From: Orbicella franksi
Taxonomy: Eukaryota
Assembly (NCBI GenBank): GCA_964199315.1
Contig: OZ116708.1
Coordinates: 2,914,001-2,978,000 of the forward strand
Length of the DNA stretch: 64,000 nt
Direction of reading: 5' to 3'
Below, piece by piece: positions 1-36,530 of the stretch (within the stretch, counting starts at the first letter, position 1; every line of letters starts with the position of its first letter). Under the pieces are notes generated by a model. It had not been told where the DNA came from. It saw only the letters and a list, made by a program, of their open reading frames with translations, and ran no database searches. The translations under genes and the position numbers were made by a program.

Positions 1-3000
1 TTCATTCCGGCTCTACAGTTAGTTACGCAAACAGCGAAACGCACAACGCTCTGTATCTTGCAATGAAGAAAAACATCGCAATGACAATTCACCTCAACGG
101 CGCAGCAGTGTTAGTGAAGACTTGCTAGACAATTGTTTTTTCGCTTGGCATTTTTACATCAATAATAATAATAGTTAAACAGGGCGGGGGAGAACTTGAA
201 CGACTCGCTCCGATTTGGGTCACCTGGTTCGGATTTGAGTCTGGCAAGGGACCTGGGCAATAACATAACTAAGCGGCATGTTACTCTCATGCTTAGGCCC
301 TCTCCTTACCCAGTAATATGAATGGGTACCTAACTTAGATAGCCTTGAAAAGTGTGAGCAATCATGGTCTGAGTACAGGCTTTGCATGGTATGGTAAATT
401 TAACTGCTACATATTGTGGCTTTTCAACCTACTAATAAACTTCACAGCGATGTAAACTTCAATATGAGACAACGGTCTCAAGCCATACTCGCCCCCAGAG
501 CCTTTCATATTTTTGGTTACGTGGTCAGCGAATTACGTTACGATATTTAAAAATCGAGTGGCCCTGGGGGCAAGCGTTGCGCAAATCTTAGGGGTTGCCC
601 GAATTCGGATCACTTACTTTTCAAGACAAGTACATATTTCAAAAACGAGACAGTAACATTACAAGAATTCTGTTTTTTCCAATGGTATCGTCAAAACGGC
701 TGTCAAACTCGTTTCCAGGGATTTTCCCTTATAATAAGGGAAAACCCTGGGAACGAAGCTAAACGGCATGTTCCCATGATGATGCCATATTAAAACCTTG
801 TGGTATTTTTCAATTTTAGGTCTATGAGGGCCTGTCCTCTTCTGGACAAACACTGGCATCACGTGTGTATCACGTGGACAAATATTGCGGGAAAACTTAA
901 TTTTTATATAGATGGAACCATAAAAAAGGCAAAATCAGAATTTAAAAGTGGGGCCGTTATCAGAGGGGGAGGGGTGGTGATTATCGGCCAGGATCAAGAC
1001 TCGCTTGGAGGGTCTTTTCAAACAATACAATCCCTCGCTGGCCTTCTGAGTCACGTGAACATGTGGAATTTCGTGTTGCGTACTTTTGCTCTGGTTGACA
1101 TGGCAACAGGGTTTGGCACGGAGGCTGGGAACACAATTGCTTGGAGAGACCTGGTCAGGAGTCAAGCGTACGGTCAGGTTAAAGTTGTGCCGATCTCCCG
1201 AGATCCTCCTAGACGTAAGTACAAAAAATCAGTATATAGAATTCAGATTGTTCAGACCTTCAGGGGAGAAGAAATATAGTTCGAATTAAGGTGGCCGAAC
1301 ACAGTTTTCGCGCGCGCTTTTGCTGATGCAATTCAGCGCGCGCACAAGGATTGCAAAAACAAACAAACAAACAAACAAACATGCCGTCAATAGAGCGCGA
1401 TCATTTTATTTACTCAGCACCCGCACTGTCTGTGCTATTTTTCTCTATAATTTAACGCAGTGTATTGATGGCTTTAGTCTTTTATTACAAAGATATTTTG
1501 GAAAAGGTAACGATGCAAAGAACCGAGCAAGTCTCAGCTTTTTCTTTGTTACCGAAAGAACCCAGTTAAATGCAGCGCATGCGTAGTAAGTCAAAAAATT
1601 GCGATTGAATGAAAAATTGCACTCTTGGAAATACGCCTATTTCTCGAGAACCACTCATTAGAATTTCACGAAATTTGGCACGAAAATACTTTAGGAAATA
1701 AGTAACTGGAGTATTGAAAATAATTGAACTTTAACAAAGGAAATTCTAGATATTCCAGTGAACCGTCAACAAGGGATAATTAAAGATCTCTCTGTTAACT
1801 TATTAGCAAAATGGTGTTAGCTTGTGAGAATCGTTACAAGCTTGTTGCACGCAAATTATAAAGAAAATCTAATGACTAGATTTTCTACAAATAAACAAAA
1901 GCGATTTTAAAGACCTGTATTCATGTTGCCATGGCAACGGCACATACGTCAGCTTTACCATCAAAAAACCAAAGTTTGTGTAGTTACCTTGCTTGCTGTC
2001 GTTTTTGGTGACCAAAGGATCAAGGGTTTTAGAGAAAAAGGTGACTGAAACACAGGTATCAAAAACTGTGTTCAGCCACCTTAATAGGATTTGAAATTTT
2101 TAGAACACGGAAAATGGAAAGGTATATATTCCTCGATAGAGCAGCTTCCAATTGATGGTTGATCAAAAGTAACGCGAACTGTTTTTAATTTGATTTACGC
2201 TGCTCTGTTGGTTTCTTGTTGTCGTTGGTTTATTGCGTTGTTTTTGTTTGCTGATTATAGCTTTGGTAGCTGCGGCTTCCTGTGGCTGTGATTGGTCTAA
2301 CGACACACAATTGAAAAACAAATCGCTTTTTTCATAACCTGCTACCATATGATAGTGACAACTGTACTGTCAAGACCTCGAGACATTCTCCTAGTATTGC
2401 CTTTCCTCTTGGTTAATAAGATATATAGAACGGTTCTTACTTCGGTGTCGAAAAGTTATTGGTTTTGCATTACCATGCTACACTATTGGTTTAAAAAACT
2501 CGCGCCACTTTTGATCCAAAACCAAAGCCAACGTAACTCGCTCGCACACTTTTTCCGCGCTTAACATCAGCTATATGTATTTGCTATGAGTTTTGATTGG
2601 TTCTCTGGATTGCCTATGTCCTCAGTTGTGATTGGCCAGAGTGATAACTTTGGTTTTGGTTTTACGGCACTCAGTGGCTAAAATTCCCTCTATGATGCGC
2701 GCCTGCAGGGAATCATAGTAGTTGTACTCATCAAAACTCATCAAGTATGCAGTCCAAGTTGATGAATACAGCTACCATGATTCCCTGCAGGCATGTCTTA
2801 TAGTGGAAATAGACGTTTCCGAATTACCTTTAGCCTCCTTCTCAAAGCGAGTCTTGGTGCCCACCTTACATGTGAAAATGAGATTTCATTCACACTCAAA
2901 TTAAACTCATTTTCATATGAATGACTGCGCACCAGGACTCGCTTTGATAGAGAGGCTTAATGCAACCCGAAAATGGGCTATTGGCCATTTAAAACTGTTC

Positions 3001-6000
3001 TATTCATGGACTTCAAATTTACACTGACCAGTGTTGTGGCCCTTTTGACTTAATTCGCAGGTCCAAAATCTGATTTCAAGTTCGTCTTTCCAACGCAAGG
3101 CACTGAAAACTTTGTCCAGCTTCACAATGCCACGTCAGATTTAGACATGGACCAGTTCACGGCCTGCGCATGGGTGAAGATCTCTGTAGAGAGCATCATA
3201 TCGCTCTTCTGTTACAGAACACCAGAACATCGAAATTCCATCGCCATCCAGCCAAAGGCTGATAGATTTAACGTCCTCATTAATGGTGTTTTTCTGTAAG
3301 TAACGCACCGTCCACACTACGCCGGAGAAATTTGAAAACGCAACAATCACCGGTCATTTTGGAGTTGTGCTCGAGGAAACCTCGGTCAGAGAAATCACAT
3401 GATTATTGCGATGTCATCGTTTTCAAAAAGCTCCGTTTTCAAAATGTTTTCCGTCCACACGAAAACGTGAAGCCGGCGTTTTCAAATTCCTCTGGTTGGA
3501 AGGGCGTTTTCGAAAAGCTCCCTTTTCGTGACGGATTAGTGCGGACTGTAGGCCTACCGTAACGATTCGATTTAGCGCCAGGGGTGCTTATTTACTTTTG
3601 GTACCTCAAGAGAGGGCAATTATTTGAGACAGGGCGCTTATTTCTTCTTTGAGAAACAGCATAATGTTCAAAACAAAAATTAATACTGTATGAACCTCCG
3701 TTGATAGGTACTGTGACGGCGCTGTAATATTATAACATAAGAATAGGGCGCTTATTAGAATGGAGGCGCTTATTGGAAGAGGAGCGCTTATTAATAAAAA
3801 CACATTCGAAGGAGGGCGCTTATTCGAAAGGGGGCGCTTATTGGATGGAGGGCGCTAAATCGAATCATTACAGTAACCGTAGAAATAAAGCTGCGGCACC
3901 TAAAATATACGGCTACGTCCATGTGTGCGTGAGATATAGCTTTCCCGAACTTTATCCATCATTGCCATATATTCACTCAATCCCCCTTACCATGAAATAC
4001 CCCTCCCCCCACACCCTCCACACCCAACCTTTCAAAACGTAGTGATTTGAATTTTCTTTGCTTTTCGTTTTTACGCAGGCATATCGACTACACGACTTTT
4101 TTCGGAACATTCGAGTGGAAACATGTTTGCTTTACGTGGGAAAATAATGCAGGAAACTGGAAATTATACATAAATGGAGAACTGGTCAAATCAGGAACCG
4201 GCTTTCAGATTGGAAAGGTATCTACTTTGTGATATGCATCATTTTCGACGTTTTTTGCGTGCAATTTTATTTCCATTGTCAGGGTCGTAGCAAACATTTC
4301 GCCTTGTTGGTATGGTAGACCTGGCCGCACCTTGCATACGACAGCTGCGCTCGCAGTACAAGCGGCAGTCAAAACTGAGCTGTCCTACCGAAACGACACG
4401 ACAATAGCCTTTTTATTCACAACTAACAAAAATTAAGACAATGCTAAAGTTGCTTTGGCCTCTTCTAATAGTTAATTTAAAAATGTCGGGTTTAATTTGA
4501 CGAGGAACAGTACATTTTGTTCAAAATAAGACAACTATTATCCTACCTGACGACACTCGACGAACTACGAGCGAGTTGCCATGCCGAACGCCGGCGACCC
4601 ATTTTTTGCGCCATATTAGAAGTTGGAGACACAAAATGTTTCATATTTTTCACTTTTTACAATCTGATATGATCTTGGGAATTGTAAATCCCTTTTCATG
4701 AATATTTAATGCCATCTCCAGTGAAAAAAGTTGCAGATTTCAATGCCTTTCCTGTTAACTTATATTGACGTCAGGACAGTAAGCTTTTTCCCGCCTGCTA
4801 AATCCAGATTGGTCAATTCAAATTTCAGGTGCGCCAGCCGTATGCGTGGCAGTTGTTCAAAGGGCGGATTACGCTATCCACTGGATAAATCACTATCCAG
4901 CGGATAGCGTGGTTTGTTTTGTTAACACTTATCCGATGGCTAGCGATTTATCCGGTGGATAACGTTATCCACCCACATGATGCGCAGGAATTTCTCTTTT
5001 CCACAGACCTGGGCGGAAAAATTGTAGACCCGAGCCAATGGATCTATAAGCTAGCTACGTCCTTGATTGTTCTTAACATGAAACTTGCAGATTCAACCAA
5101 ACTAGAGATCATGCCATACTCAAACGAAACGACAGACTTCCTTCATGATCTTTGTTTCTTTTTTCGTGCAGGGTAATGCATAGTGAGAGTCACTTAAGAG
5201 AAGAAAGTCTTAACAGTGAAGGTCAAAATGAAAGGGTAAAATCTGATTGGTCGAAAGCCGTCAAGTTGCATAATACGACTGCAAGTAAAGATCTAATTAA
5301 GGTGTCCCTGGCAACCAAGCCGCGATTGGGTTCATATTAACTGCAATGCCCCTCTCCTCCGCCCCCTGAAAGGTATCGCAGATATCCGCTGGAATCGTAA
5401 AAAAGGGAGCCTAGCCTGGATACCATGGCAGCCTAATTTTTTACTTGCATGCTTAGCCTCACGTCGCCTTACCTTTCTTCTCTTAACATACTCAGGCTCA
5501 TTTTCAATGGTCTTCGAGTCTCCATCTTCCCCAATAACAGAAAGCGTTGCTTTAATTTCAGGTTATTAAAGTAGGCGGTAAAGTTGTGCTGGGACAAAGA
5601 TACTCACAGGTCGCAGATTTTGATGAATTCAAAACAGGACAGTCCTTCATTGGTGAAATCAGTCATCTGAACATTTGGAATACCACGCTGGAGCCAAAGG
5701 TTGTCAGCTCCATGTATCGCGGGTGTGATTTTATTGGCGGGAATTGGTTCAACTGGGCAGCGATCTTACAGGGTGAAGTGGCGGGAGATGTTACCATGGA
5801 AACACCAGCAGACTGTACACTACCAGGTCAGATATAACGTCTTAAAAATGTGTCCCCTTGAAACAGCTAAGTCAGGTGGCACTTAGAAGTGAAGGGAGCG
5901 GAAAATCTTCTGACTTTCGACATTCGACATCCGACATCGAACATCCGACACCCGACATCCGACATCCGACATCCGACATCCGACATCCGACATCTGACAT

Positions 6001-6492
6001 CTGACATCTGACATCTGACATCTGACATCTGACATACGACATACGACATTCGACATTCGACATTCGACATTCGACATACGACATTCAACATTCGACATTC
6101 GACATTCGACATCCAATATCCGACATCCGACACCTGACATCTGACATCAGTCTGGAATCCGAAATTTTTTTTGTTTGACATCTATCGTTTTACGTAATTT
6201 GACGTTCGTTGTCTGAACGTTTGACATGGCACATTTGCGCTTGATGATTAACTTTTTCTGATTGCCTTCATTGTTTACAGATGAAATAAGTTCCAACAAA
6301 AGGAACAAGGTTTGTGCGACCGAGACAATGGATGGATGCACATCTCCTGTGCGTGCATTGTTTGATGGAAATTCAAATGGTCGCAGCAAGAAATGGAGGT
6401 GTTACTTTATAGACGCCTTAACAGATGATGCCTTTGGTCTTGAAGCGTACGACAATGATAAGAATTCAGCATGCTACAAAAGCTTAAATTGA
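1..6492 (+). CDS. Tandem pentraxin-domain protein, 3' part (begins upstream of window). Exons <1-109, 820-1214, 3061-3295, 4079-4217, 5562-5826, 6281-6492
   Basis: All introns GT..AG with consistent phases. Translation gives two pentraxin domains (WHHVCITW...GQDQDSLGGSF...LSHVNMWN; FTACAWVK...WKHVCFTW...FIGEISHLNIWN) and a short Cys-containing C-terminus ending TGA at 6492. AATAAA near 6613. Confidence 0.85.
1290..2080. mobile_element. Non-autonomous TIR element flanked by TTAA (Kolobok-like)
   Basis: TTAA|GGTGGCCGAACACAGTTTT ... AAAACTGTGTTCAGCCACC|TTAA; 19-bp TIR with 1 mismatch; GG..CC ends; no coding capacity. Confidence 0.7.
3304..3902. mobile_element. PIF/Harbinger-like MITE copy interrupted by a second MITE
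   Basis: Shares CGTCCACACTACGCCGGAGAAATTTGAAAACG and the internal body with copies at 31167-31564 and 39280-39658; interrupted at 3557-3873. Confidence 0.65.
3557..3873. mobile_element. TA-flanked (Tc1/mariner-pogo-like) MITE nested in the Harbinger-like MITE
   Basis: TA|CCGTAACGATTCGATTTAGCGCC ... GGCGCTAAATCGAATCATTACAG|TA; internal GGCGCTTATT repeats; related fragment near 17025-17135. Confidence 0.65.
5913..6150. repeat. 7-bp minisatellite (GACATCC/GACATCT/GACATAC/GACATTC)n
   Basis: Directly visible blocks of variant heptamers in the last pentraxin intron. Confidence 0.95.
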
Positions 6493-8628
6493 TTGTTAAA
6501 GACCAAAAAATAATATTTTATTGTATTAATATTAGTATTAGTATAGTTTTTCAGCAGTGTCCCCTAATTAGTATGGTGTATTATTTCCAGGCTATAAGGT
6601 TTTTGACACTTTAATAAAGTTCTCACTCACTCACTCACTCAATGTGGACTGATTGGAGTACGATTCAGAAAGTAATCGTGCGAATAATTTCAAAATTGGA
6701 CGAGCGCGAAGCGAGAGGCCGATTTGAAATTACGAGCACGATTAGTCACTGAATTGTACGACACGAGGACCAGTTACTAATTAATCGTGTCTATAACAAA
6801 TTACGAAATTAGAAAAGTCTTCTGAGAACGTCTTTAGAGCTAAAAAGTCACTAGTGCTCTCCATAAGTTTTAAAAACCGAGGAAACACTGAGAAGGAAAC
6901 CATTGAAGTGCGAGTAATTGACGTGCAGATAGCGTAGGTATCCAATTTAAAAACGTTGTAAATAGATACCTGTAATTGGACAGCCACGTAATCCCTTGCC
7001 GATTACGTGACAAATGGGCGCACGGAGAACCAGTTACGATCGAGAACTTTGTTATAGATATGATCAACTGAGAAAGAGGACTGGACGCAAAAACTAAAGA
7101 GTGCCTGCCTCGACCTTGATTATTCTGGATATCACAGAAACTGAATCTAATTATTGTTTTATTGTGCATTGAACGAAAAAACAAAAAATGGAAGTCATGT
7201 TTTTGCTTCTTCACTGACGGCAAGCAACACAAAGCGAGCGAACTTGACATGATTACCCTTAGAAATCATGCACCGCGGTCATACATGGCATGATTACCCA
7301 TGACCTTGAGTGTTCTTGACATGATTATTGTATAATCTGCAGCTATATGACGTCACAGGCGCTGATTTCGAAAATTCACTGTACGCTTTCGGCCAATCAG
7401 AAAAGAGATAGTGAGTTCAATGTATAATAATGTAAAATAATGAAATCACATCAATACATCCCAGTTGGCCGTGATAACGAGAGCAGAACAAAGAAATATT
7501 AATTTAGGACCAAACTTACTTTTATGAGACATACATCATTGACGATTACTGTAATCAGTTATATTGTTAAAGAAGTTTCGTTTTTGTCATATATTTCAGT
7601 TTTGACCTTGCTTTACTTCCTACTTTCAATTCTTTTATTTTATAACTGACATTTAACGGTATTCACGTTTGTGGGAGGCGCGGTGGCCAAAATGGCTGGC
7701 GCGCTTGACCCCAGTCCTCCGCAGGATGGGCTCCTGTCATCCATAGGAAAAAAGATGGCGACTCTACATTTTTCCACAATACCATACGAGGCTTACAGGG
7801 CCCATAAAATACAAGACCATACAAGGAAAGCCATAGTTTTTGCGATATTTCTCCCTGTGCTAACGACATCGTGTTTGCAAGTGAAGATTTTGAAACTTTT
7901 CTGCACGTTTTTATGAGCGCGCTGTTAATGTTTTCATGCGCTAGGAATCATAGGCAAATGTACCAGTTGCCACCTTTTTTCCTACGGAGGGTTCGAATTA
8001 AACCTATAATGAAGAGAGTGTATACAATATGCTGTATGCATGAGTATACTTATTCTTGTACAAAAGAAGTTGTTCTTGTTAAAATATGACTAAGCCTTAT
8101 TAGTTTCATAAGCTTAAAAGAGAGGCTTATTACTGAGAATAAATAGTTCTTGTTCATTTGATACCAATTGGATCTGATTGCGTCATAAAATATGAAATTA
8201 TGTTGTTTTTGTTGGTATATATATATATACCAACATATAGCCGACAAAACTTAATTTCCGATAAAATTGTCAGAAGGATTTTGTGGTAAAATATTTTTCT
8301 GCCACAAGTTAATATAAAAACGTTTTCGACTTCCAGGCTCCAAGAAGAAAGTTTTAAACAAGAAAAAGTTTGTTTAATTCTTACAACTGTATTAGAAATG
8401 TTGTTGTTGTCGTGTGAAAAGACCCCGAAAACAAGGTTGAAAGCGCATGTGACGAACTTCACGTTTTAACTTGCCCAAAAGGAAGGATAGAAGGAAACGA
8501 AGCCGACCTCTATTACTGTCTATTATATAGCTGAATTTTATTGTAAATGCCAAGACATTTTCTGAATTTTATCACGTACTGCGGTGAGATTATCTAGAGC
8601 TACTTTGTTGTGTTACAAATGTTAGAGA

Positions 8629-18800: not shown

Positions 18801-20575
18801 AGCCCCTCAGTTTCAACATAGTTCACTTAGCATCTGGATCAGAGTCGCCATTACACAGAGTTGTTTTCACCCAGTATTTGCCACTATTTATCTTCAAAAC
18901 AAGAAAAGCGACAATAAGAACTAATTTACACCTAGTCTTCAATTTTTCTGCACGGCCAGACGTATGCAACTGCAATCCAATCAACCAGAGGACTTGCTTT
19001 GTTAAACTTTTCTGGAAATTAAAATCGCTCGTCTTTTGTTTCACAGAAGTGACATTGAATGCTGACTTTTTTGGTTTTACGCCTCGTCATAGCGATAAGG
19101 AAAACGTTGGCAAGAATGAGCAACGTAAATTTATTGCTTCCTTTTTTCATGCTAATACTGGCGATTTACTGAATGTGAAATAGACCCACTGCTATAGCGA
19201 ACTTTTTACCCTCTATATAAACTGATCAACTGGATCTGATCAACTGCGCCAGTCCTGTGCAATTTTACAAGGAAAAGGTTGGTAGTTCTTGATGTATAAG
19301 GTACTAACAAAGTAGTTCTAAAACGACATAGATTGCGAAATTGGGCTAACAAAAGAAAAGGTTTTTTTCATTCAGAATGACTGCTTCAACTTCACGATAG
19401 CAGGAGTTATAAATCAGCTAAGTTTAATTAAGCCTTGGTCAGAAAAACCATATTCCTTCAGAAAACGTTGTTGTGATGGATTTGAGTGCTCGCTTTCATA
19501 TGAAGTATTTAATTTCTCTGCTTGAAACGTGCCAGTACCGCTAGCAGATTTGCGTCAAACAAGAATCAAGCCTTTAGTTTGCCATAAAGATTTACTGACT
19601 TGCTTATGCGCAGCGTAACTGGATAAAATATATAATGAATGGCCTTTTAATCCCCCCGAGATATAATCAGTATATAATCTGTATCTACCTTAATCCCTCA
19701 ATTAAAATCTCCGTTATCAAAAGCAGTACGAGAGAATATCCTACTAAACTCGATAAACCTCGTTTACGGACAAAATTTAATTCTGTAAATCTTGTTCCAT
19801 CGTGGATTGAATATTTTTTTATTAGGTCGGCCGGCATTGAGTTTGACGATTTGCTGCAAAATTTTTGCGAGAATTTTTTACGGGAGTCTTTACCTGATTT
19901 TCAACGTCCAATATTTTGCGCGGTAGAGTTATTCGAGAACATGATTTTTAAAAATTTCAGACCAGCGTTTTTAAATTCATTTTCATTTATTAAATGAATC
20001 AGTCAATTTGAAACTTCAACATCCGTCCCTCAAGGCAATCCCTCGAGGCATAAGGTGTTCGCAATATTCATTTGGTCAAAGTCCCATCCCTCGGGCTAAA
20101 AATGATGTTCAAATGCACCACCTTGGGTGGCACTGGGCGATCGAATACCCCTACCCCAGGGACATACATGGTAAAAACGAGTAATGGAAAAGAAAAGAAA
20201 CAATTCACCTTCAAACGCCCGCTTTGAAGTTCCACTGTGTTCCAGTTAAACAACTTTGAAATATAAAAGTTATTAAATTTTTACCAGCAAAACTGTTTAT
20301 GTTTACCTTCGAACACAAGCTCTCCAAGGGCCATTTTGAGAGCCACAATGTTACAATGAACGCGTAGTCTGTTCTCTCTCCTCCGCAGAGGCTCTGACAG
20401 GTTTTAGGTGGGGAGAGTCCGCTGTACGTAGTGAGTGCAGGCGTAATAAAATGGCGAGAGCGGCCGCGAGAGCCTCTGCCAGATGTCACGCCCAATATGG
20501 CCGCCATCTGGGGGAGGTAACTTTTCATCAGTATTCCTCACCGGGGTATGCCGCACCTGTTTGTCGGTCAGCAAA

Positions 20576-23500
20576 ATGGCGGCCAGATTGGAATGTCCTG
20601 TTCTGCGGTTACGCGATGTTCAAGTACAAAAAACGTATTTGGATGCGTGGAAAGCTGGAAAACTTTGTTGTCCTCATAAAGACTGTTTGTCTGAAAATAT
20701 TTTGCTATGTAGCGATGGCTTAAAGCATCACTTCAGAATTCGACATTCGCGAGACCCGCCATGTGGCGATCAAGAAATTAAAGAAGGAAAGAATATCTTA
20801 AGGAAACGTTTGGCAGATGAAACTCTGAACAACTTATTGATTCTGTCTCAAAAGAGAAGAGAACAAGTAAGGTTTCTTTGAAGTGTTGTTAAATTCATTG
20901 ATTATCGAGTACGAAATTTCCTTGCAGTGCTGCTAAACTTAAGCTTATTAGTTATATTTTTCCTCGACCAAATAAATGCTTTTCATGTGTATTTTGAAAT
21001 GTACTCGATCAAATCGCTGATATATTTCCTGTAAGAAAAATATTGCTGTAAAAAGGAGCTTTCTGTTCAGCAGTATAATCAAATTCGATAAATTTAAGCT
21101 TCAGTTGAAAGACTTTTCGTTAATAAACAACAATCCGTACCAAAATATTCTTTTAAAAGCAGCACAAAAATACCACATATAAGATATGTATTAAATTTCC
21201 TGTTTTCTTGTTTTAAATAAAGCTCAGGAATGGTTGATTCGTTGATGTGTCAGTCTTGTAAATAGCCTTTATTTGCTGGAAATCCCCTTGAAAACTTATA
21301 AATTATTCCATTTATTATTTTATTGGACAAACACCAAAAATACTTAACAGTCAAAATAACTTCAACTAAATACATACAGTTGCAGTTAATTTTCATCTTT
21401 AACGTTGCATAATTATTTATTAAACTCGCTGATCACCTGTCTTCTATAACAATCCAGAATTCAGCTCATTATGAATCATTCACCATTGAATTCAATGATG
21501 AATGTTTTGCCTTAGTGGCAACACACGAGAAAGAGGCAGCAAAGCTGTTTGGCCTTTACCTTTGGCATAAAGGAGTATTGAACTGGCTGGAGGCTGGAAA
21601 TAAACCTGTAACAGTTGCCGTGAAGAACAAGTGGTTGGAGTCAACATTTGCCTTGTGGCGAAATAAGGAAAAAATCTATGCAGAAGCCACGTTTCATAAA
21701 AAGGTAGCTAGAAAGATAAATGGGGTAATTGTCTTTGTCCCACTCCAAATTTAATTGTGGATGAAAATATGAAAGACATACCATAGAATAAAACAATGCA
21801 TTCTGTTTGTTGTTGGATGTTTTAAATTTTTATTCTTTCATTTTAACTTTTAACTAAATTAACATACACAGAGTAGAATTTTGAGACTTTCAGAATTGCA
21901 CCTAAAACATACAATTTTTACCCATAAAGACAAGATTATTTTCTGACTCCTCTGGGTGAGTGCTGTAAAATTCTATCCTAACACTAGTATTTAAAATTAA
22001 GTACTTTTAAAGGAATTAAAAAACACCATTTCACAAATTATCCTTACTGGTCTCAAACATTTTCATGAGTACTAGTTGGGAGAACCTGTATACACATCAG
22101 GACATAAGTAAATATTCATCATTGGAGATCATTTCTTTAATTCTCATTACCTATGTATTACAATTCACTGATAACAGGAGAACATTGACCAGCAAATTAA
22201 TTAAAATTAACCTCTGTTTGCCCAGATATATTCTATTCTTTTTGGCCAATTTTCTTGTTGAAATCAGCCACTGCCATGCCCCCCCCCCCTAAAAATACCT
22301 TCACCATCTTCAAAAGAACTGCTTCATGTGGCAAACATAATCTTTTGTCTGCTATTTAAATTGTAGTTTCAGGCAAGTCCACTACCTACTCCTGCACCTG
22401 AAACCCAGCCAGTTCATGCTGGAATTATGCAAGGGGTTCCAGATGCCGTGTCTAAAGAAGATGAACCTCTCCATGTCATGAAGACAGTTTTCGGATATGA
22501 TTCCTTCCGTGAGGGACAACAACAGGCCATCCAAGCCATAGTTGAGGGCAAAGACTGTGTAATATTGATGCCCACTGGGGGAGGCAAAAGCTTAATTTTT
22601 ACTATTGCTTCCATAATTAAGCAAGGTCTAACTGTCATTATTGAACCTCTAAAATTTTTAATGGAAGAGCAGGTTGCTGCTCTGAGGGAAAAAGGTGTGT
22701 CTGCCTTTTACTTTAACTCTTCACTCACAGACACAGAGATGGATTTTGTAGTTCACAGTCTTACTCGGTTTAGGTCCCAATATGTTATGCTTTTTACTAG
22801 TCCAGAATGTATTTTTAATGTAAGACTTCAAAATGTCTTATCTAACTGGAAAGGCAATAGCCAGCTGGCCTTCATTGCCATTGATGAAGCTCATTGCATC
22901 GATTCCTGGGGAGTTGGCTTCAGACCAGATTTCACAAGACTAGGAGAACTAAAAAAGTTTGGAACTGCAATGGCAGCTTTTACTGGAACAGCAACACCCC
23001 ATACTTTGCAGGTAGTTATTGACAGCTTAAAACTCCAGCAGTGTACTGTAATCAAGACATCTTTTATGAGAGAGAACCTGTTTATTGAAGTGCAAGAGAA
23101 GAAAGACAATGCAAAGAAACAAGTGGCCACAATACTACAGGAGAAATTTCAGAATAGTTGTGGAATTGTTTACTGTGCAAGGCGTCAGGATGCAATGGAC
23201 ATGGCTCAAGAACTAAAGAAACACAACATAAGTGTCACATATGTCCATGGCACCCTAAGTGATACTGACAGAAAGAAACATGAAGAACTGTGGAGCAATG
23301 GCAATGCCAAAGTTATGTGTGCAACAAAGTGCTTTGGAATGGGAATCAATAAAGAAGATGTACGATTTGTCGTTCACCTAACATTCCCAGAATGCCTTGA
23401 AGACTATTACCAGGAAATTGGAAGGGCTGGGAGAGACAGAAATCCTGCAACATGCATTGCTTTGTTCAAATTTGAAAACCGGTCTTTTCATCTGCATAAC

Positions 23501-24838: not shown

Positions 24839-27800
24839 TTAATTTGTCAAAAGGTCAAAGTGTAGGTCAGGAAAGGATTCATACAGCTTATCCTTGAATT
24901 TCTCTGCAACCTTTTTGGTGCCCTTCTCATTGACATCCAAATGACATTTTTGAACTTTACCACTTGGTTTGCCACTGCCTTCAAGAGTATACACATCAGG
25001 GGGGTCATCCGATTGAACTCCATTGAAGAATCCATTTTTTAAGCAAAACCACGTGCCTTTAAGCTGGTCTAGGAAAGAGTTTGGAACAGAATGTCTTTGG
25101 GTGGTGTGCTCATCAAAACCTTGTTTGGAGGAATATGCTTTCCTGACAGCTTTAAACAGATCAATACTAGACATTATCCTTTCACACATCTTCACTGAGG
25201 TATGTCCTAGAACGGAAAATTACAGACATATTACATAAGTGAGGGTTTTTTTTTCATATTTATAATAATTTCTATACTATGACAATGTTCTGACAACTAC
25301 TTAAAGACTAGACATTTTAAGTGATAGAATTTTTTTTTTTTGATATTTCATGTTCAATAGGTGTCCACAACATTAAAAGAGAGAGTGCCTTGCTTGGCCA
25401 TCTTTACACAAAAATAAAGTTTGATCAAATGAATTCATTTTTGTAAGGTATTTGATTGGTGATGATAACGATAGTTATTTATAACATAGCTAGCAGAGGC
25501 TTGCAATCAAATACCTCCATTGTGCTCACTAAAGCATGAACCAGTTGTTAACTGGCAAATATATATGATTATTTAATTCATTCACAACTTATCTTTAGAC
25601 CTGTGAGCTATATGAAATTTACAAAAGTTGACATGACAAAAATTGTTACAAAGCTGAAATTTTCCCCCAAGAACACATGCTCTTAAGTTCGCATGACATG
25701 TATCAATAAAACTGTTTCCTGCTATACATTGTAGTCTGGGCAACACTACAAAATCCATGATGTCAGAGGGTAACAGTACACCTTTGCCTGCAAATGTTGA
25801 GGGCCATCCTTATGTATTAATTATGAATTATAACAAATCACTTACTCCCTTAGGAAATCAATTAGTTAACTTTGTTTTCCTTGAACAAAATTAACTGTTT
25901 TCCCTCAGGACCAGTCATTTAGTATCAAGTGTATTCAACTGAGTGTCAAATTTGAATTAATTTCATCACTCAGACAATTTTCCCATATGATTAGGGCACT
26001 ATTGTGCTGGTTGGTCAGGACCACCTGTATAATCATTACAACTGAACTGCTCTTACCTGACACATAGATCTTGAGTGGCTGAACTATTTCAGCTTCCACA
26101 AATGCATCCAATTCCATGGCTCCCCCTTTCTTTCCAGAAAGGTTAACTGCACAATTCTTTTGAAGCAATTTGCGGAATGCCAAAGGCCATTTTCCAAGAA
26201 AATTGACAACATGAGCAAATGTTTCTGTGAAATAGTTCTTGAAATTCAAATGAGCATAAGTGGGCAACTGCAGAATATAGCAAACCTCTCTTGCTTGGCC
26301 TAAAACATGTGATGTGGAGATGTCAAACAGTTCAAGGAGAGGCCCATAGTACAGGAACATTCTTGAATAGTACCTGAAAGCAACATTCCTTTCACTTGAT
26401 TGCTCTATCCATTTAATGAATGCATCATATAGCACATCATTGTGGTTCCCTGACTTTCTGAGGCTAGCTGACCTATCTCTCGGACCTGGATAACAGTCAC
26501 TTTTAGCAAATTCAATTGCAGCAGCTATTCCATATGACCTAGCACAGTCTTGTACTGCTTCTTTTATTCGATCTTGATTTCCTGTCTCAAACTTTTTCTT
26601 CTTGAAAACATCAGAAATGAGCTTTGGTCTCTTCATTACCTTGTTGGCAATGTAGTGGAATCCACCAGGTCCTTGTTCTTTAAAACAGGCTTCACAAAGG
26701 TATCCTTTTGTATGCAGATCACCTGGTATTATCCCTGCCCACTCGTAAGCTGAAGCTCTCCCCATCACTCCCCTGATAGTTTTGCAGGTGCCTTGATCTC
26801 CTACTAAGCCTGTAACAAATCCTTCCGAGTTACGATCCACCTGTGATACTGGTTCATCAGATCCATCCCTGATCAAAATATCTGTTCTCTTAAAGGAGTC
26901 ATCATAACCTGATATGTCATCATCCTCATTATCTGACGTTTGTGGGTTCAGTACTTCATATATTTCAGCTAGTTGCATTTGTTCTGCAATTTTAAGTGGG
27001 CATGGAATATTTGTGAACAAAGGCCCTCTCACACAAGCTCTGTGATTAACCAGAAGTTCACAGACCTGTTTGTTTTTCTTTATCACTGCTATTACAAGAG
27101 GTGTTGCACCACACATTTCTTTTGCATTTGGGTTGCAGCCAGCTTGCATAAGACAACAAGCAAGGTCATAGTTTCCTTGTTCCACAGCCATATGTAACAA
27201 GGTACGGCCAAGATGGTCTCTAACATCCTGCAGGTTAATGTTGCTCAAGTCTTGAATAACACGTTCCACTGAATCACTTTGTTTAGATTCCCACACCTTA
27301 TCTGCAATGTTATTATACAGCGCAGTGAAAACTTGATCACACTTTGCAAAGCGACTCTTAGCTTGCTGAATAGTTGTTCTATTTTCATCATCAGAATCAC
27401 CTGCAAGCTCATCATCACCATCATCATTTGTGGTTAACTCTTGAGAACTGTCAAACTCTTTTTCTGTTGCCTCCAAGGTTTTTAATAAGTCAGCCATTTC
27501 ATCTCTGTGTTCATACAACATGATTAAAAACTCAACATGTTCCCTGGCTTTTTTAAGGCTGAAATTCCTGTTCCTTTTGTCAAATGGCAATGTTTCCAGT
27601 TTGTCCACTTTATTGCAAAGGCCAAATTCCTCAGCAAACTGATCTAGAATCACACTTGTTCCTGTAAGGGTTGCATTATTTTCTAATGACAGAGGTAATA
27701 TGTGAACATCAGTCTTCACTGTGGACATACTTGTGTCAAAAATGTTTTCAATGCTGGGAATGCTCAGTTTCACATTCTGTTGGGTACAACCATCAGCATT

Positions 27801-29619
27801 TGACAACCACTGGTTACATTGTTTTTCATTCATTTCACAAATGGGTTTTTCATGTGGTGGAATCTTGTTCAATCCATCATAAAGCAACTGGAGAATGTAA
27901 CTTTTACTGAACTTCTGCCAAATTAAAAAATGTTCATTACAGTTTTCCAATTGTATATTGTTAGCATTCCACCCTACCACATTGTCCTGGCTCTGCAGTG
28001 AAGTGTCAGGTGTACTCAACAAATCTTCAATGCCAGTGATGTCTGGGTTTAGTAATCCTCTAACAGTGAAATTCCACATGTTCACCTTTGGCACCTTAAA
28101 CAACCTATGGTGTCTTTGATATCCCCTGTGAATGTTCACATTGTCCAATAGCAAAAACAAGGGTTTCTCTGCTGGTATATTAGAGTGCAGTTTGTCAAAC
28201 TTTTTCCTGTTGTACCTGTCCAGGAATGACATAAGAGTGTCCCAGTGAAGAGTTAATCCAACTTTATTCAGCATATTGACCATTCGTGTACCAGCTCCAT
28301 AAGCAACCAGAAGAATTGTAAAAACTAATGTTACATCATTTTGGCACTGATTGTTTCTCAGGCTCATTAATAGGCTTAGAGAGTGAACTGCTCCTTTCTC
28401 CTTTCTCCTGTCGTCACTTGGAAAGAGAGTCTTAACAATGTCAAAGAGAAAGGGAAACTTCTCTGCAACATTGTTTACAAGATCTGTAAAAATCTCCTCA
28501 TTGATAAAGACTTCCTCACCACTTCTCAATCCAAAACTTAATGTTTTTGATAACAAGTCTACCTCCTCTGTAAGTTTTGTTTTCTCTGACTGAGAAAGTG
28601 TGGATGACTGATCAGTTCTCAATAAAAATTGAATTTCACGCTCATAGATCTTGTCAAGTAATTCTGATTTAGCAGTTAACAATTCAGTTTCCGTTTTGTA
28701 AGCCAACAAAAGTGCTTGCAAGGCATTAGTCTCTCCAGCAGTTACCTTGGCAATAATATCCTCCAGAAGATCATTTCCTCTTTTTCTTGACTCAGCAATA
28801 AGGGCTTGTACATTAGCTATTTCACTATCCACAGTAACTGTTCCTGATTTATCATCTTCACAGTTAAAAGAAACTGCTTTTCTGATGTTAGTATAAACCC
28901 CTTTTCTTTTATTTAATTTGGAAGAGGGGAATGTTTTTGTTACAGCACGTGTGGCCAGCCCTTTCTCTTCTTTGTTTAACTGTAAAGCACTGAGAATGGA
29001 TTCTTGTGTGGCTTGTTTCCCTGGACTTTCCACAAACCTTTCTTGGAGAACAGAAGAAAACGTTTCTTTCCTGTCCTTGTAAAATCGTCCACTTAAATTC
29101 TGTCGAGACCGTTTACTGGCGGGCTCAACCTTCGATGGTGTTAACTGTCTTTTCTGTGGGTCATCTAAAAAACCAAAGGAGGTTGTGAGGTTTTCGTTTA
29201 AAGGATTTACACATGGCAAAATGGCCACCAAAAGCACATAAAGCACTTAAAATAGAGCATTTCAATAACACAGCATATATATACAAAAGGAGATACGGCC
29301 GGATGTAGAAAAAAATTAAATAAGATTGAAACGGATTGCGATACCGATTTTTTGAAAAATTAGTGGACGGAACAGTTTTCAAAGTTTAAATCGTTTGTTT
29401 GTAACTTTTTATATGCTTAATTGTTACTTCCGAGAGACAGATTTGTTTGTAACGAAGCTATGGCTTTGTAAAGTTAGTGAACTAAAGGCCGAAATTTAAT
29501 AAACGAAATGCAGCTAGTAGGGATAAAAGACAAAAAGAAGACATAGAAGAGGAATATTTACCTTCAAGAGACATCTCTTGGAAGGAAATGTCAAGCGCCT
29601 CCTCTCTTGCTTCCGCCAT
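24839..29619 (-). CDS. Transposase-like protein (Academ/DUF6589-like DDE core) with ankyrin repeats, 1177 aa. Exons 29619-29562, 29164-26057, 25206-24839
   Basis: Phase-1 GT..AG junctions join MAEAREEALDISFQEMSLE to the 3.1-kb open exon and to the 24839..25195 ORF without stops. Candidate catalytic motifs LLLDNVNI, LVGDQGT, PGDLHTKG, LDAFVEAEIV; ankyrin repeats GRTLLHMAVEQGNYDLACCLMQAGCNPNAKE / GATPLVIAVIKKNKQVCELLVNHRA. Confidence 0.82.
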
Positions 29620-31166
29620 TTTGACATTTGACCTCCAAAAAACAACGTACTTGTCACTACTCCCCATAGTTTCAGCCAGGTTCCAGGGGGGGCTTCGGAG
29701 AACAATATTTTTGCTGTTTTTTGCGAAAATATGTAACGTTGTCTGGAAAATAACGATTGCTAATTGTAGTAGCATACCTAGCGCTGATTTTTGCCAAGTT
29801 TCAAGCTCGCAAAGTCCGCGAGGGCTGAGAAATTGATCAATGTACCAGAAAACGACAAGGATGTACCAGAAAACGACAAGCTTCTGGCAGAGGTTCCCCG
29901 CTCAGTGGATCCCGTTCTTTTGCGCCTGCACCCACCTTGCCCAGCGGATTTTTACAACGAAAGCCCCATTGGGAACCTCTGCGGAGGAGAGAGTAGTCTG
30001 TTGATGTTACCTCGATTCACCACGAGGAACAAGATATCTTGTTCAAGGTTTCATGTTTTTCATTTGCAACAATCTGTTCCGGTTTCTGGCATTTTAAACC
30101 CCTGTCTGTGAATATTTTATCGCTCTCTCTGTGAAGAAAAGTGGCGCGACTTCAATGCCTTTCTATTAACATAGATGTGTTATTCAGACAGTGCTGTTTC
30201 AGTTTTTGCCTGCTGAGTGCTGATTATTTTCAGTCAAATTTCACAGACACTGGCCTTATCGGCAAGTTAGTCATCTTAGCATCAAACCCCAGTCTCCCTG
30301 CTTATCTTGACGAATTGCAGCCTGGCGGCGCCTGGCCACAAGCCATTGGACATTTTTCTCACACCACTGCCCGTTTCTATGGAGAAATAAAAAAAACAAT
30401 GACAAAATTTGTACATCTTACGATCGTTCTTCAATCAGGTGCTTTAAGGACGGCCCAGTATAAAAATCAAAAACCGAAAGTTTACTTATTTTCACGGATG
30501 AGGTTTACGGATCATCTCACTTTGATCTCAAATAATGATCATTGAATTGATTCATAACGTCCTCAGAGGAAACAAAATTCAATCACAAAAATCATATAAT
30601 TATTTATTCTAGTTAATTAATTCTAACTTTAACAGGAGTACCGAATTGGGTCTAATTTCGTATTTTTTCTTTGTTTTTTCTACCAAACATGCAAACGACG
30701 TGTTTTCCGGCATTGAAACCACAAAGTTTTTAAAATGTTGGTCTACTTTATAAGCTTAGAAATTGAAAATAATGCTTCACATTTAATTACACGCAAATAT
30801 GTTTTCAAGAGAAAATGATGATTGATGTTTCCTAATACAGCAATCGCTCGCCAAACTAGGACAGGAAATGAGTCGCCAATTGAAGTGCCTTCAAGTCTAG
30901 AGTATATATTTGCGACAAATGAGCTAGGTTGATTATTACAAACAGGCTTCGAAGAAGTAAGATGCAATAATTCAGAACCAATGGCAGTTAACTGAATCAA
31001 AACACTGGAAATGCAGCATCCCAATATTTTATTTTTTAATAGAATTAACTGCGGCCGTGTATCGGTCTACGATCAGTTATACGATCCAGCCGAATTTGAA
31101 AATGATGATGCACATTTAAATGCAAGGAAATCTATTAATCTATTAATCTCCTGCCGTGATCGATTA

Positions 31167-33299: not shown

Positions 33300-33649
33300 C
33301 CAGGCTGGCTATGAGCTAAAAGCATAATGATTATTTTCTTCTTCTTATGGGATCTCATCTCTTCGATCCTTATGGGCCTACTGGCGCAATGAGAAGAGAT
33401 GATGGGAGATGACAATGATTTCAAAGTATTTTACAATCACATGGAGCTATGACGAGCTTGTGACGTCTGATTGCGCCCCTTGCCTAAAAACTACCACAAT
33501 ACTCTACAATGTGCAGGTTTCACGTCGCATGCATGTAAAAATTATTTCAGTCCCATTGTTTTATTGGCACAATGGAATTTAGAGAACATATAGCCAGGTT
33601 GGGCTTGAGGGGATATAATTCATGGTAGGATACATGTGTAGTTTGCTTT

Positions 33650-33772
33650 TATTTACTGCCGTTTGCTTGCGATTAGCATTTATATACTGTGTTTGCTTGC
33701 GATTAGCATTTATACACTGTGTTTGCTTGCGGTTAGCATTTATTTACTGCTGTCTGCTTGCGATCAGCATTT
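33650..33772. repeat. 30-bp tandem repeat, about 4 copies
   Basis: GTTTGCTTGCGATTAGCATTTATATACTGT repeated head to tail with few substitutions. Confidence 0.9.
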
Positions 33773-34049
33773 AAGGGATGAAGGGGAAAAGAAATAAATG
33801 TAACCTACCATGAATTATATGCCGGCTTGAGTGCCGCAAAAACACTAATTTATGTAGCCAGTGGAAACTAGGTTACAGATTAGTTACAATCAGAGGAAAA
33901 ACAATTTGTACCAATACCTTTAATCCTAAGCCCACTATCTTAAATTACGCAAATTTTGGTTTTGAGAACTTGTCGCATGGCATGTGCAGCTCCGACCTAG
34001 AACAAAAGATATGATAAAGGAAGCGGGAATGAACAAAAGACACGAGCGA

Positions 34050-34302
34050 GAGCAGGGATGGCGCAGTGGTGAGAGCGCTCACCTCCCGCCAATGTGGCCT
34101 GGGTTCGATTCCGGCCCAGTGCCATATGTGGGTTGAGTCTGTTGTTGGTTCTCGCCTTGTTTCCCGAGGATTTTTCTCTGGATTCTGCGGTTTTCCTCTC
34201 TCCACAAAAACCAACATCTCCAAATTCCAATTCGACCAGGATAGAGGACCTGTATGAAAACCAGATAAGGCTGACGTGGCTTCCTCTCTAAATATTGTAA
34301 TT
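34050..34302 (+). mobile_element. tRNA-derived SINE, second family
   Basis: GGGATGGCGCAGTGG (A box) and GGTTCGATTCC (B box) with an AT-rich tail; inverted homologous copy at about 49830-50077. Confidence 0.8.
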
Positions 34303-34641
34303 TGAATACATACATCCTGAATACGAGTCTAAACCTGCAGTTTCGAAAGATATATTATGGCATTTTTAGGAAAGTCGTACACAGTCAACTCTCATCATTT
34401 CCGGCCCTGTGCGATGAGATATAGTAGTGTACATTGTATGATGCACGCTATCTGCCGATCAGGCACAAGCACTGCGCTTGCCATAAAATGTACAATCATA
34501 TTAATATTCCAAACGTAGGAATAGTCTGCTATAAATTTAATAGCAGTTGAACATTTTACCTTTTTGTGATTCTTTTCAGGCTTCCAAGGCAGGAAAATAT
34601 CTCGGGATACTTTTTAGATATACTAAGGAGAAGGCCCCGTG

Positions 34642-36530
34642 ATGTCAAATTCAGTGCTCTTACTGGTCATGCTGGTGGCTATGGCCTTCATGCTCACAAG
34701 AGGAGATCAGGTTTCCTGGGACGTAAGTACTGTTACCTCGTTTTTGTTCTCTTTTCTTCCTCCTCCTCCTCCTCCTCCTGCTCCTCCTCCTTGTTGTTCT
34801 TGTTCCTGTTCCTGTTCCNNNNNNNNNNNNNNNNNNNNNNNNNNNNNNNNNNNNNNNNNNNNNNNNNNNNNNNNNNNNNNNNNNNNNNNNNNNNNNNNNN
34901 NNNNNNNNNNNNNNNNNNNNNNNNNNNNNNNNNNNNNNNNNNNNNNNNNNNNNNNNNNNNNNNNNNNNNNNNNNNNNNNNNNNNNNNNNNNNNNNNNNNN
35001 NNNNNNNNNNNNNNNNNNNNNNNNNNNNNNNNNNNNNNNNNNNNNNNNNNNNNNNNNNNNNNNNNNNNNNNNNNNNNNNNNNNNNNNNNNNNNNNNNNNN
35101 NNNNNNNNNNNNNNNNNNNNNNNNNNNNNNNNNNNNNNNNNNNNNNNNNNNNNNNNNNNNNNNNNNNNNNNNNNNNNNNNNNNNNNNNNNNNNNNNNNNN
35201 NNNNNNNNNNNNNNNNNNNNNNNNNNNNNNNNNNNNNNNNNNNNNNNNNNNNNNNNNNNNNNNNNNNNNNNNNNNNNNNNNNNNNNNNNNNNNNNNNNNN
35301 NNNNNNNNNNNNNNNNNNNNNNNNNNNNNNNNNNNNNNNNNNNNNNNNNNNNNNNNNNNNNNNNNNNNNNNNNNNNNNNNNNNNNNNNNNNNNNNNNNNN
35401 NNNNNNNNNNNNNNNNNNNNNNNNNNNNNNNNNNNNNNNNNNNNNNNNNNNNNNNNNNNNNNNNNNNNNNNNNCATCATCTTCAACTTCTTCTTCTTCTT
35501 GCGCTGCTGCTGTTGCTTTTGCTTCTTCTTCTTCTTCTTCTTCTTCTTCTTGTGCCGCTGTTGCACGGCAACCTAGAAAAAAAAGGTCAAAACGACAATT
35601 TCCGAATTGTCACTTTCAAGTTGTTCATACATTCAGGCTACAAGCGCGGCAAAAGTTTTAATGTTGTAATTAGTGAAATCACAGCTACAGAAACGTTTGC
35701 TATTGCAACCTAAAAAAGGAATTTGTTCCTTAACGAAAAAACTGCATATGGTTGTTCGTTTCAACCGTGCCTGATATCGAATATGACTTGCATTTACATT
35801 TACTTGTAATGACTTTGATCTCTTTGGTTCGTTTCGGCGCCCTCCAAAGTGTTGTTCCTCTAAATTGTAATTAATCCTTTCTTAAACAATTAGTGTAATT
35901 AAAGTGTTGATTCCTGTTTAGGTGGATGATCTTTTTAATGAATATGACGATGATGGGGATGGTCTTGTTGCGCCAGAAGAAATAGAGAACCATCTCTCTG
36001 CTGCGATGGTTACCATTAATAATTATGTGATGACATACGATTCAGATAATGATGGCAAGCTGAACAGCGAAGGTAAGAAACGTGATAAACTGTACTCTCA
36101 GTTCCAGATCTCTTGTGGGCGAAGCTTCGCCCGCAAGAGACCTGGGAACGAGATTGAATAAACTATTTCCGGGAACCGTTACAAGGGCGGCAGATATTCA
36201 GTGGAAATTTGAATGAAATCTCGTAAATGAGACCAGTCTGGGCGTGATTCAAACTTCATTTCACCCCTGGAGAATATTATTCTGAAAAAAATACATAGTA
36301 ACTCCAATGCATATGGGTATAAAGACTTTTTCTGCGGTGTTGATGGGAGTAGCAATAATGAAGAAATTCATACTAAGCTATAGTTACGGCAACTAGATGA
36401 GCCAAACTATAAAGTTTGCGAAAAGCTACTTTACTTTGTTCTTTCAATTTCACGTTAATAATCATGCTATTATTATTCATTTGCAGAATTCGCAAAATTT
36501 GCGGCATTTGCGAATATCCAAGATCAATAA
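34642..36530 (+). CDS. Small secreted two-EF-hand protein, 91 aa. Exons 34642-34722, 35922-36072, 36487-36530
   Basis: Signal peptide MSNSVLLLVMLVAMAFMLTRG; EF loops DDDGDGLVAPEE and DSDNDGKLNSEE, the second completed across a phase-1 intron. Intron 1 contains an N gap that could hide an exon. Confidence 0.75.
34758..35540. repeat. (CTC)n/(CTT)n microsatellites flanking an assembly gap
   Basis: Trinucleotide runs on both sides of the N run. Confidence 0.9.
36094..36156. mobile_element. Tiny palindromic MITE with degenerate 9-bp flanking repeat
   Basis: TACTCTCAGTTCCAGATCTCTTG...CAAGAGACCTGGGAACGAGATTG flanked by GATAAACTG / AATAAACTA; similar short elements near 486-575, 705-760 and 54548-54570. 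Confidence 0.5.

Follow-up and report, generated by a model that had tools for sequence, protein, structure and literature searches.

Here, we describe a transposable element in the genome of the coral Orbicella franksi. It lies in a stretch of 64,000 nucleotides (contig OZ116708.1, positions 2,914,001-2,978,000, assembly GCA_964199315.1) that we call the window, and all coordinates of the element are window positions. With a probability of roughly 80%, the interval 20365-30002 holds a single complete copy of an autonomous-type, cut-and-paste DNA transposon that belongs to a young family, measures 9.6 kb and, by its defining features, is of the AcademH type. Between short inverted repeats the element carries two convergent genes, one for a putative transposase of the DUF6589 family and one for a predicted RecQ-family helicase. 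An earlier note on this DNA had interpreted the interval as a young transposon resembling AcademH. Our analysis supports this interpretation as essentially right, and we are dealing with a new young family of a known, barely studied kind.

Ends, copies and age of the family

The terminal inverted repeats (TIRs) of the element are perfect over 18 bp and are bordered by a perfect 9-bp target-site duplication, as the earlier note had reported. The left end reads TAGTCTGTT followed by CTCTCTCCTCCGCAGAGG, and the right end CCTCTGCGGAGGAGAGAG followed by TAGTCTGTT. Inward of the left TIR a weaker subterminal inverted similarity extends over about 80 bp, to position 20454. The exact 18-mer of the TIR tip occurs 72 times in the 497-Mb genome, compared to no occurrence of the reversed control, and it is therefore not a chance match.

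A genome search with each end returned seven further long copies and one two-end element of 176 bp, giving a total of eight copies and a derivative. In nearly every copy the edge of similarity coincides with the first or last base of the inverted repeat, or lies one to two bases off. All nine insertions are flanked by 9-bp duplications, each with its own sequence; eight of these are perfect and one (copy C3) has a single mismatch, and a target consensus is not evident among the nine. The family has inserted through a 9-bp staggered cut of the target at no fewer than nine sites. Since each copy occupies a different site and has its own duplication, we conclude that this is a young transposon family and no pair of host genes. 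Domesticated single-copy genes, the outcome against which the earlier note had proposed to count copies, are likewise dismissed by the seven copies at other loci with their different duplications.

The identity of the other copies to the window copy is 99.0-99.4%, and among all eight it is 99.1-99.8%. In a full-length alignment the eight copies differ pairwise by 0.18-0.91%, and each of them departs from the majority base by 0.26-0.55%. Private changes account for 215 of the variable sites and shared ones for 25, which means that the divergence is star-like. Variation that is mostly private in this way is what one burst of recent date leaves behind. The closest pair, C13 and C8, which are 0.18% apart, look like the product of an event later than this main burst.

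About 9.6 kb without large indels are found in the window copy, C13, C14 and C5, while C3 has a 940-bp deletion and C8, C6 and C10 contain nested repeats. Both coding sequences are intact in the two clean copies, the window copy and C13, and also in C6 and C10, where the nested insertions lie only in non-coding parts (the 5' leader, helicase intron 1 and the spacer between the genes). The remaining copies are damaged: a nonsense codon interrupts the helicase of C8, the transposase has nonsense codons in both C14 and C5 and in C14 a 7-bp deletion as well, and in C3 both genes have deletions. Coding differences between the copies are non-synonymous rather than synonymous at a ratio of about 3:1. 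This excess therefore indicates neutral decay after insertion, as for a transposon and unlike host genes. The description of the family as young and possibly active, given in the earlier note, agrees with the low, star-like divergence and with the two clean copies in which both genes are open, and judged from these sequences current activity of the family is possible.

The 176-bp element (G000:C10:4083070-4083245, loci L010/L026) is a non-autonomous derivative that consists of the outer 87-90 bp of both ends. It is flanked by a separate 9-bp duplication, GGTCGGGAT, which suggests that no more than the outer 90 bp at either end are needed for mobilisation in trans. In another coral sample (X15), an RNA-library run contains a 183-bp contig with the left-end/right-end junction of this derivative and a flank that matches no site in the assembly; it may represent an insertion polymorphism of the derivative. 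Dozens of short elements (e.g. L012, L028, L034, L037 and L047) have the CTCTCTCCTCCGCAGAGG tip in common with the window element, and over about 70 bp their terminus is 76-84% identical to it. They look like related families of miniature inverted-repeat transposable elements, non-autonomous and possibly mobilised by the transposase of the window element or by sister transposases.

The putative transposase and its predicted catalytic core

The minus-strand gene encodes a protein of 1177 amino acids (aa) without internal stop; the phases of its three exons fit and both introns have GT..AG borders. At 40-63% identity, the 122-aa peptide of exon 3 matches the C-terminal ends of P0012, P0013, P0014 and P0010, homologues that were obtained from eukaryotic gene finders. 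Predictions of other homologues that were made from open reading frames (ORFs) only end at the same 'YVSG' position, and the last transposase intron is therefore conserved. Two tail-to-tail genes of three exons each, without stops or frameshifts, had been described in the earlier note, and both are indeed intact in the window copy.

Two Pfam families are recognised in the long ORF. DUF6589 matches residues 809-1054 (profile positions 104-361 of 410, E 2e-12), and ankyrin repeats match residues 657-737. An AlphaFold2 model of ORF residues 280-1063, computed from an alignment of 36 sequences, reached a mean predicted local distance difference test (pLDDT) score of 83 and a predicted template modelling (pTM) score of 0.81. 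In the model, strand beta1, with D368 in the motif 'LLLDNVN', is followed by a beta2 hairpin, a helical insert, beta3, alpha1 and two long helices with the ankyrin module. Then come beta4, D817 in 'VGDQGT', a helix, beta5, the motif 'PGDLH845' and about 220 helical residues, which end in a helix with E1045, D1047 and E1051. As modelled, this order of strands and helices is that of an RNase H-like DDE core with a large helical insertion before the catalytic glutamate, and acidic residues that follow beta1 and beta4 are conserved. The stalk and ankyrin repeats between alpha1 and beta4 are, in the same model, a second and unusual insertion. This region (model residues 354-500) matches solved ankyrin structures with Z-scores of 12-14. 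Homologues of the same layout are 39-75% identical, and in more distant ones (28-33%) the C-terminal core is likewise preceded by the ankyrin module. The module is kept in all tested members of the clade, down to 28% identity, and is absent from a canonical DUF6589 relative.

The catalytic residues were approached by comparison with this canonical clade. A profile-profile alignment of the window clade and the canonical DUF6589 clade gave a probability of 89.5% and an E value of 2e-6 over 313 columns; the profile against a single canonical sequence gave a weak match (E 0.34). In this alignment D817 falls on the near-invariant D in the motif 'GDQLT', H845 on the histidine of 'WHTK', and E1045/D1047/E1051 on 'E-D-D...QE'. 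We propose D368, D817 and E1051 as the putative catalytic triad, with E1045 as the alternative for the last position. D843 is a poor candidate for a catalytic residue, as it is not conserved in the canonical clade.

A search of a protein atlas by language-model features gave only weak, unrelated matches. An exhaustive profile search with the C-terminal core yielded 337 proteins, and the best 150 of the 337 are close relatives or fragments, with no bridge to other families among them.

The helicase gene and its transcripts

The product of the plus-strand gene is, by sequence, predicted to be a helicase of the RecQ family, as had been suggested before. It reaches 381 bits against the NCBIfam model TIGR00614 recQ_fam, whose cut-off is 219.8, and contains the Pfam domains DEAD, Helicase_C, RecQ_Zn_bind and RQC. 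The closest solved proteins are bacterial RecQ, BLM, RECQ1 and RECQ5, the best of which (bacterial RecQ, BLM and RECQ1) match with E values of about 1e-75 to 1e-68. Walker A (MPTGGGKS), DEAH and arginine-finger (QEIGRAGRD) motifs are intact in the translation, and an HRDC domain was not detected in the protein. The protein is about 738 aa long; all four combinations of the alternative splice sites are in frame and give proteins of 731-740 aa with a single terminal stop. The peptides encoded upstream of the core form two distinct conserved blocks in the related loci L063 and L064, one for exon 1 (41-47%) and one for exon 2 (41-51%, as far as about exon residue 84). By eye, exon 1 shows a possible C2H2-like Cys/His motif, CCPHKDC...HHFRIRH, which has no Pfam match.

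RNA coverage was examined over one 6-kb stretch that includes 300 bp of transposase exon 2. Two poly-A runs show low but continuous coverage from about 20565 to 25364. Three spliced poly-A reads of the species span the junction 20866>21458, which has GT..AG borders, and the helicase side is both transcribed and spliced. Contigs from RNA libraries that hold 84-87% of the words of the element contain the introns, and they may derive from carried-over DNA. The introns are also retained in a contig that codes for the 99%-identical protein P0001; being collinear with the genome, it is uninformative on splicing.

Since the start codons lie only 203 bp and 375 bp from the ends of the element, the promoters must lie in the terminal regions. 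The motif CAAAATGGCGG is found around both start codons (20571-20585 and at the transposase start, 29619), with similar copies nearby at 20492-20506 and 29216-29230. We take it to resemble a YY1-type initiator motif, and it may be a promoter or initiator element shared by both terminal regions. The tandem unit of 21 nt near the right end may be a candidate subterminal binding site.

Related elements in the same genome and beyond

The genome contains at least 86 DUF6589 loci, which belong to many diverged families. At 25 or more of them a RecQ-like helicase, 30-39% identical to that of the window, is encoded 2-4 kb away on the opposite strand. Some of the loci form tandem triplets (C7:5.93-6.06 Mb) or arrays (C14:16.1-17.3 Mb).

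One of these relatives, L061 (C14:848000-857990, element 724-8105), is a distant family in its own right. The element is 7,382 bp long, has inverted repeats of 69 bp starting with CAACCTCG and is flanked by a perfect 9-bp duplication, TCTTGGCAC. A zf-AD exon is present, as is a 598-aa DUF6589 ORF that matches the profile over its full length and has no ankyrin repeats; a RecQ-like helicase is encoded convergently. Between the genes a palindromic unit, TGATGATGTTCTGATCATCATCA, recurs every 196 bp. The AlphaFold2 model of this ORF has a pLDDT of 87. Compared with 48,161 representative solved chains, the model is closest to the Drosophila P element transposase (Z 9.8 over 285 residues) and Hermes (Z 8.8 over 281 residues), followed by about 35 integrases and DDE transposases that include retroviral integrases, ISCth4, Tn5, Sleeping Beauty, RAG1, Transib and Mu. 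Foldseek placed Hermes first, weakly (E 0.016). A search of the ESM Atlas led to DUF6589 clusters of Mollusca, Cnidaria and Mucoromycota and then to bacterial IS66 and DDE_Tnp_1 transposases, and clusters of the AlphaFold database consist mostly of entries named DUF6589 domain-containing or uncharacterised. These models suggest that DUF6589 is a transposase domain, which is in line with the RNase H-like transposase that the earlier note had expected in the long ORF. One published paper discusses DUF6589 as a possible fungal virulence or regulatory factor.

Closer relatives come from contigs of other samples, in which transposases of 55% and 47% identity are found in the same order of transposase, small exon 3 ORF and convergent helicase. 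The element of the 55% relative (L063) measures 7.6 kb and has inverted repeats of 170 bp, the outer 18-20 bp of which are CTCTCTCCTCCGCAGAGG. A tip common to a family whose transposase is only 55% identical must be strongly constrained and is therefore likely the site of cleavage and recognition. The flanks of L063 in its contig form no duplication, which may be due to an assembly join at the repeat.

An XPG nuclease was not found near any DUF6589 locus in the genome. Five near-identical, seemingly multi-copy XPG_I loci do exist elsewhere; the two that were examined (L059, C14:3444700-3454690, and L060, C2:11200400-11210390) have small exons and lie a few kb from HIRAN-domain ORFs. A duplicated gene or a further family of repeats could account for these loci.

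Table 1. Features of the transposon in the window and target-site duplications of the other copies
Feature	Position	Strand	Remarks
Left target-site duplication, TAGTCTGTT	20365..20373		9 bp; identical to 29994-30002; different 9-mers in other copies
Left TIR, CTCTCTCCTCCGCAGAGG	20374..20391	+	18 bp perfect, 21 bp with one mismatch; genomic copies begin here
Helicase exon 1	20576..20866	+	ATG 20576; 97 codons; donor 20866 RNA-confirmed
Helicase exon 2	21458..21724	+	acceptor 21458 RNA-confirmed; donor 21703/21704 or 21724/21725, both phase 0
Helicase exon 3	22373..24028	+	RecQ core, stop included; alternative acceptor 22367
Transposase exon 3	24839..25206	-	122-aa C-terminal tail, stop included
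Transposase exon 2	26057..29164	-	helical N-terminal region, then split RNase H-like DDE core (modelled)
Proposed catalytic codon E1051	26094..26096	-	codon checked
Conserved H845	26712..26714	-	codon checked
Proposed catalytic codon D817	26796..26798	-	codon checked
Ankyrin module with helical stalk	26910..27350	-	ORF residues ~633-779, between helix alpha1 and strand beta4 of the modelled catalytic core
Proposed catalytic codon D368	28143..28145	-	codon checked
Transposase exon 1	29562..29619	-	ATG 29619; 58 nt, phase 1; joins exon 2 in frame
Subterminal tandem duplication, 21-nt unit ATGTACCAGAAAACGACAAGG	29840..29881	+	
Right TIR	29976..29993	-	exact reverse complement of 20374-20391
Right target-site duplication, TAGTCTGTT	29994..30002		9 bp; matches left copy
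C13 duplication			TATCGGGCG
C14 duplication			TCCCAAACG
C8 duplication			ACTTGCATG
C3 duplication			TAGTTTGGG / TGGTTTGGG, one mismatch
C10 duplication			CCACTGAGC
C5 duplication			TCCTTCTAG
C6 duplication			ACAACTTCC
176-bp element duplication			GGTCGGGAT

Classification and alternative explanations

In the account of Academ elements given in PMC10045372, AcademH is characterised by duplications of 9 or 10 bp and a helicase and AcademX by duplications of 3-4 bp, a difference that is thought to be related to the possession of a helicase versus a nuclease. AcademH elements are described as low-copy in Basidiomycota, Ascomycota and Mucoromycota and are also reported in animals (PMC10799480). Like AcademH elements, the window element is a TIR transposon that has a transposase with a separate RecQ-related helicase, a 9-bp duplication, an animal host with fungal relatives and a low copy number. 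Both published marks, the duplication of 9-10 bp and the helicase, are thus present, as the earlier note had recognised in calling the element AcademH-like, and they recur in the distant second family L061. DUF6589-fold proteins were seen in cnidarians, molluscs and Mucoromycota, to be compared with the range reported for AcademH. What may set the window element apart from described AcademH families is the ankyrin module with its helical stalk inside the predicted catalytic core of the transposase. The length of the TIRs varies between the families (18 bp in the window family, 170 bp with the same tip in L063, 69 bp in L061), and the termini read CTCTCT in the window family and CAACCT in L061. 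The remark of the earlier note that the ends are unlike those of Academ holds in so far as one bivalve Academ-1 consensus in a published supplement starts with TAG; however, this TAG says nothing on the termini of AcademH. In the published supplements that we searched for a mapping of Pfam families to Academ, none was found.

Other groups of DNA transposons fit less well. AcademX and Academ-1 may belong to the same transposase superfamily and are likewise large DNA transposons of marine invertebrates, but they have an XPG nuclease and duplications of 3-4 bp. The window element has a helicase, a 9-bp duplication and no XPG match in Pfam, and an assignment to AcademX was rejected. Judged from the model of the ankyrin-free relative L061, it shares with the P element and Hermes an RNase H-like core in which a large, entirely helical insertion precedes the catalytic glutamate. 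The sequence identity is only 7-10%, though, and the proteins of the window have no hAT or THAP match in Pfam. P and hAT elements make 8-bp duplications and are not known to carry a helicase. Helitrons and KolobokH also bring a superfamily 1 or 2 helicase of their own. Helitrons are not known to have TIRs or duplications and encode a Rep/Pif1 protein, and Kolobok duplicates TTAA; the window element, in contrast, has TIRs, 9-bp duplications without fixed sequence and a helicase of the RecQ type, and a Helitron was rejected as well. The same holds for hAT, P and Kolobok, given the missing hAT dimerisation or THAP match, the 9-bp duplications without fixed sequence and a fold resemblance that is only distant. 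For MULE/Mutator elements the duplication length would fit (typically 9-10 bp), but there is no Pfam match to MULE, SWIM or FAR1 at E values up to 0.1.

Several points weigh against the interpretation as an autonomous-type AcademH transposon that may still be active. Membership in AcademH, which we consider quite likely, is based on architecture, duplication length and taxon range as set against the published description of AcademH. In the transposase, D368 was matched by its motif and its position on the strand, and the profile alignment covers only the C-terminal half. Fold searches with the model of the window protein itself returned only ankyrin and DARPin matches; the transposase fold was therefore demonstrated on the ankyrin-free relative and transferred by alignment. 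Of the four introns that the earlier note had predicted and proposed to check by RNA, helicase intron 1 was found in the three spliced reads, and the other three have no RNA support in these data and rest on frame, splice consensus and conservation. The interval 25365-26364, which comprises the last transposase intron and the first 300 bp of exon 2, on its 3' side, is almost devoid of RNA coverage. The empty site that the earlier note had suggested to look for did not turn up: in this assembly we found neither an empty site nor an element-free haplotig or an excision footprint, and both flanks of the window copy match elsewhere only old, roughly 70-76% diverged repeats, with no haplotig or paralogue in which they are joined. 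Finally, the roles of the helicase and the ankyrin module are proposals.

The element might be a real, recently mobile helicase-bearing DDE transposon whose DUF6589 transposase is not an Academ transposase at all and belongs to a separate, unnamed superfamily that reached the combination of helicase and 9-bp duplication independently. This would accommodate a comparison with Academ that was made by description, the termini of both families that differ from the TAG of Academ-1, the missing XPG nuclease near the DUF6589 loci and the database names that call these proteins merely uncharacterised. We nevertheless regard it as improbable, since both published features that discriminate AcademH occur in two distant families, the taxa with DUF6589 proteins fit the animal and fungal range of AcademH, and the TAG of Academ-1 is uninformative on AcademH termini. 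Far less probable still is an origin from two host genes, for a RecQ paralogue and an ankyrin protein, which segmental duplication would have spread and which inverted repeats would flank through coincidence; in our view the boundaries of the copies and their duplications refute it. It is true that the domains of both proteins also occur in host genes, but the similarity between copies ends exactly where the inverted repeats do, the flanks and the 9-bp duplications differ from copy to copy, even the 176-bp derivative has a duplication of its own, and the differences between copies bear no sign of purifying selection.

A more serious alternative concerns the activity of the family. It may be young but dead, with reading frames that are intact because too little time has passed for their decay, and with no copy that moves today. 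Broken genes in four of the eight copies, a distance of at least 0.26% of each copy from the majority base, the nearly absent RNA over the sampled part of transposase exon 2 and the failure to find an empty allele in the assembly all speak for it. On the other hand, in two clean copies neither gene is interrupted and the conserved catalytic and helicase motifs are complete, the 0.18% between C13 and C8 points to an event after the main burst, the foreign flank of the 176-bp derivative in another sample hints at insertion polymorphism, and the helicase side is transcribed and spliced. On balance we think that extinction is a real possibility, at somewhat less than even odds. A young transposon family of the AcademH type remains the interpretation that we prefer. 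A considerably wider reading is rather doubtful at this stage: DUF6589 would be the catalytic domain of helicase-bearing (AcademH-type) transposases across animals and fungi, the coral clade would form an undescribed sub-lineage in which the ankyrin module in the alpha1-beta4 loop tethers the transpososome to a host protein or to its own helicase, and at least one copy would still be mobile.

A possible mechanism and its significance

Structurally, the DUF6589 protein probably belongs with the P/hAT-like DDE transposases and moves the element by cut-and-paste. It would bind the CTCTCTCCTCCGCAGAGG ends, cut there and join them to target strands staggered by 9 bp, with D368, D817 and E1051 (ORF numbering) as the presumed catalytic residues. 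The RecQ-type helicase may serve as an accessory factor that unwinds or remodels DNA at the ends or at the target during cleavage or strand transfer, and this unwinding could be related to the long 9-bp stagger. The ankyrin module might offer a protein-binding surface for a host factor, for the helicase or for another transposase subunit.

To our knowledge, AcademH has been described only from sequence, and such elements pose the question why a cut-and-paste transposon needs a RecQ-type helicase of its own. The coral family could provide a compact test system, with two complete open copies, a natural mini-element of 176 bp that marks the cis-acting ends and a set of candidate catalytic residues. 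With it one may ask if transposition requires the helicase and if the 9-bp stagger is determined by it. Reading DUF6589 as a transposase domain matters for genome annotation in fungi and invertebrates, and an ankyrin module placed within the predicted catalytic core gives a new clue to the recruitment of partners by transposases. If a copy is still mobile, an AcademH element would for the first time be open to experiment, corals would gain a native vector for gene transfer, and such an active native transposon would serve coral genetics.

Further observations

Near-identical copies seem to exist outside the assembly. Runs X1-X14, which are labelled as four different organisms, coral metagenomes and one seawater metagenome, each contain 92% of the 31-mers of the element, from which we estimate that the copies in those runs would be about 99.7% identical. 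Very close species, shared polymorphism or horizontal spread could explain this.

Other repeats are nested in three of the copies (C6, C10 and C8, loci L050-L057). The one in C6 is 3,564 bp long, with inverted repeats of about 60 bp (CATGCCATTAGGGACAGCG..) and a 10-bp duplication. C10 contains two, of 6,165 bp (GTGACCTGATTTGGG..) with a 4-bp overlap and of 3,962 bp (GAGCATGTCCACCAGAGG..) with a 5-bp overlap, CTTAA. The insert in C8 measures 930 bp and has no inverted repeats.

In the spacer between the two genes, 31-33 bp at 24608-24640 are common to far more abundant transcripts, and reads of all RNA runs continue from there into unrelated sequence on both sides; the stretch is probably a fragment of another repeat. 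A scan of the window for bacterial promoters and terminators, a type of scan that is irrelevant to a eukaryotic element, found nothing. Outside the element, a 30-bp tandem repeat with four copies (33648-33773) adjoins a stretch of low GC content (28%) at 34000-36000, in which TCC and CTT microsatellites occur together with overlapping long ORFs in several frames; these ORFs are probably an artefact of composition.

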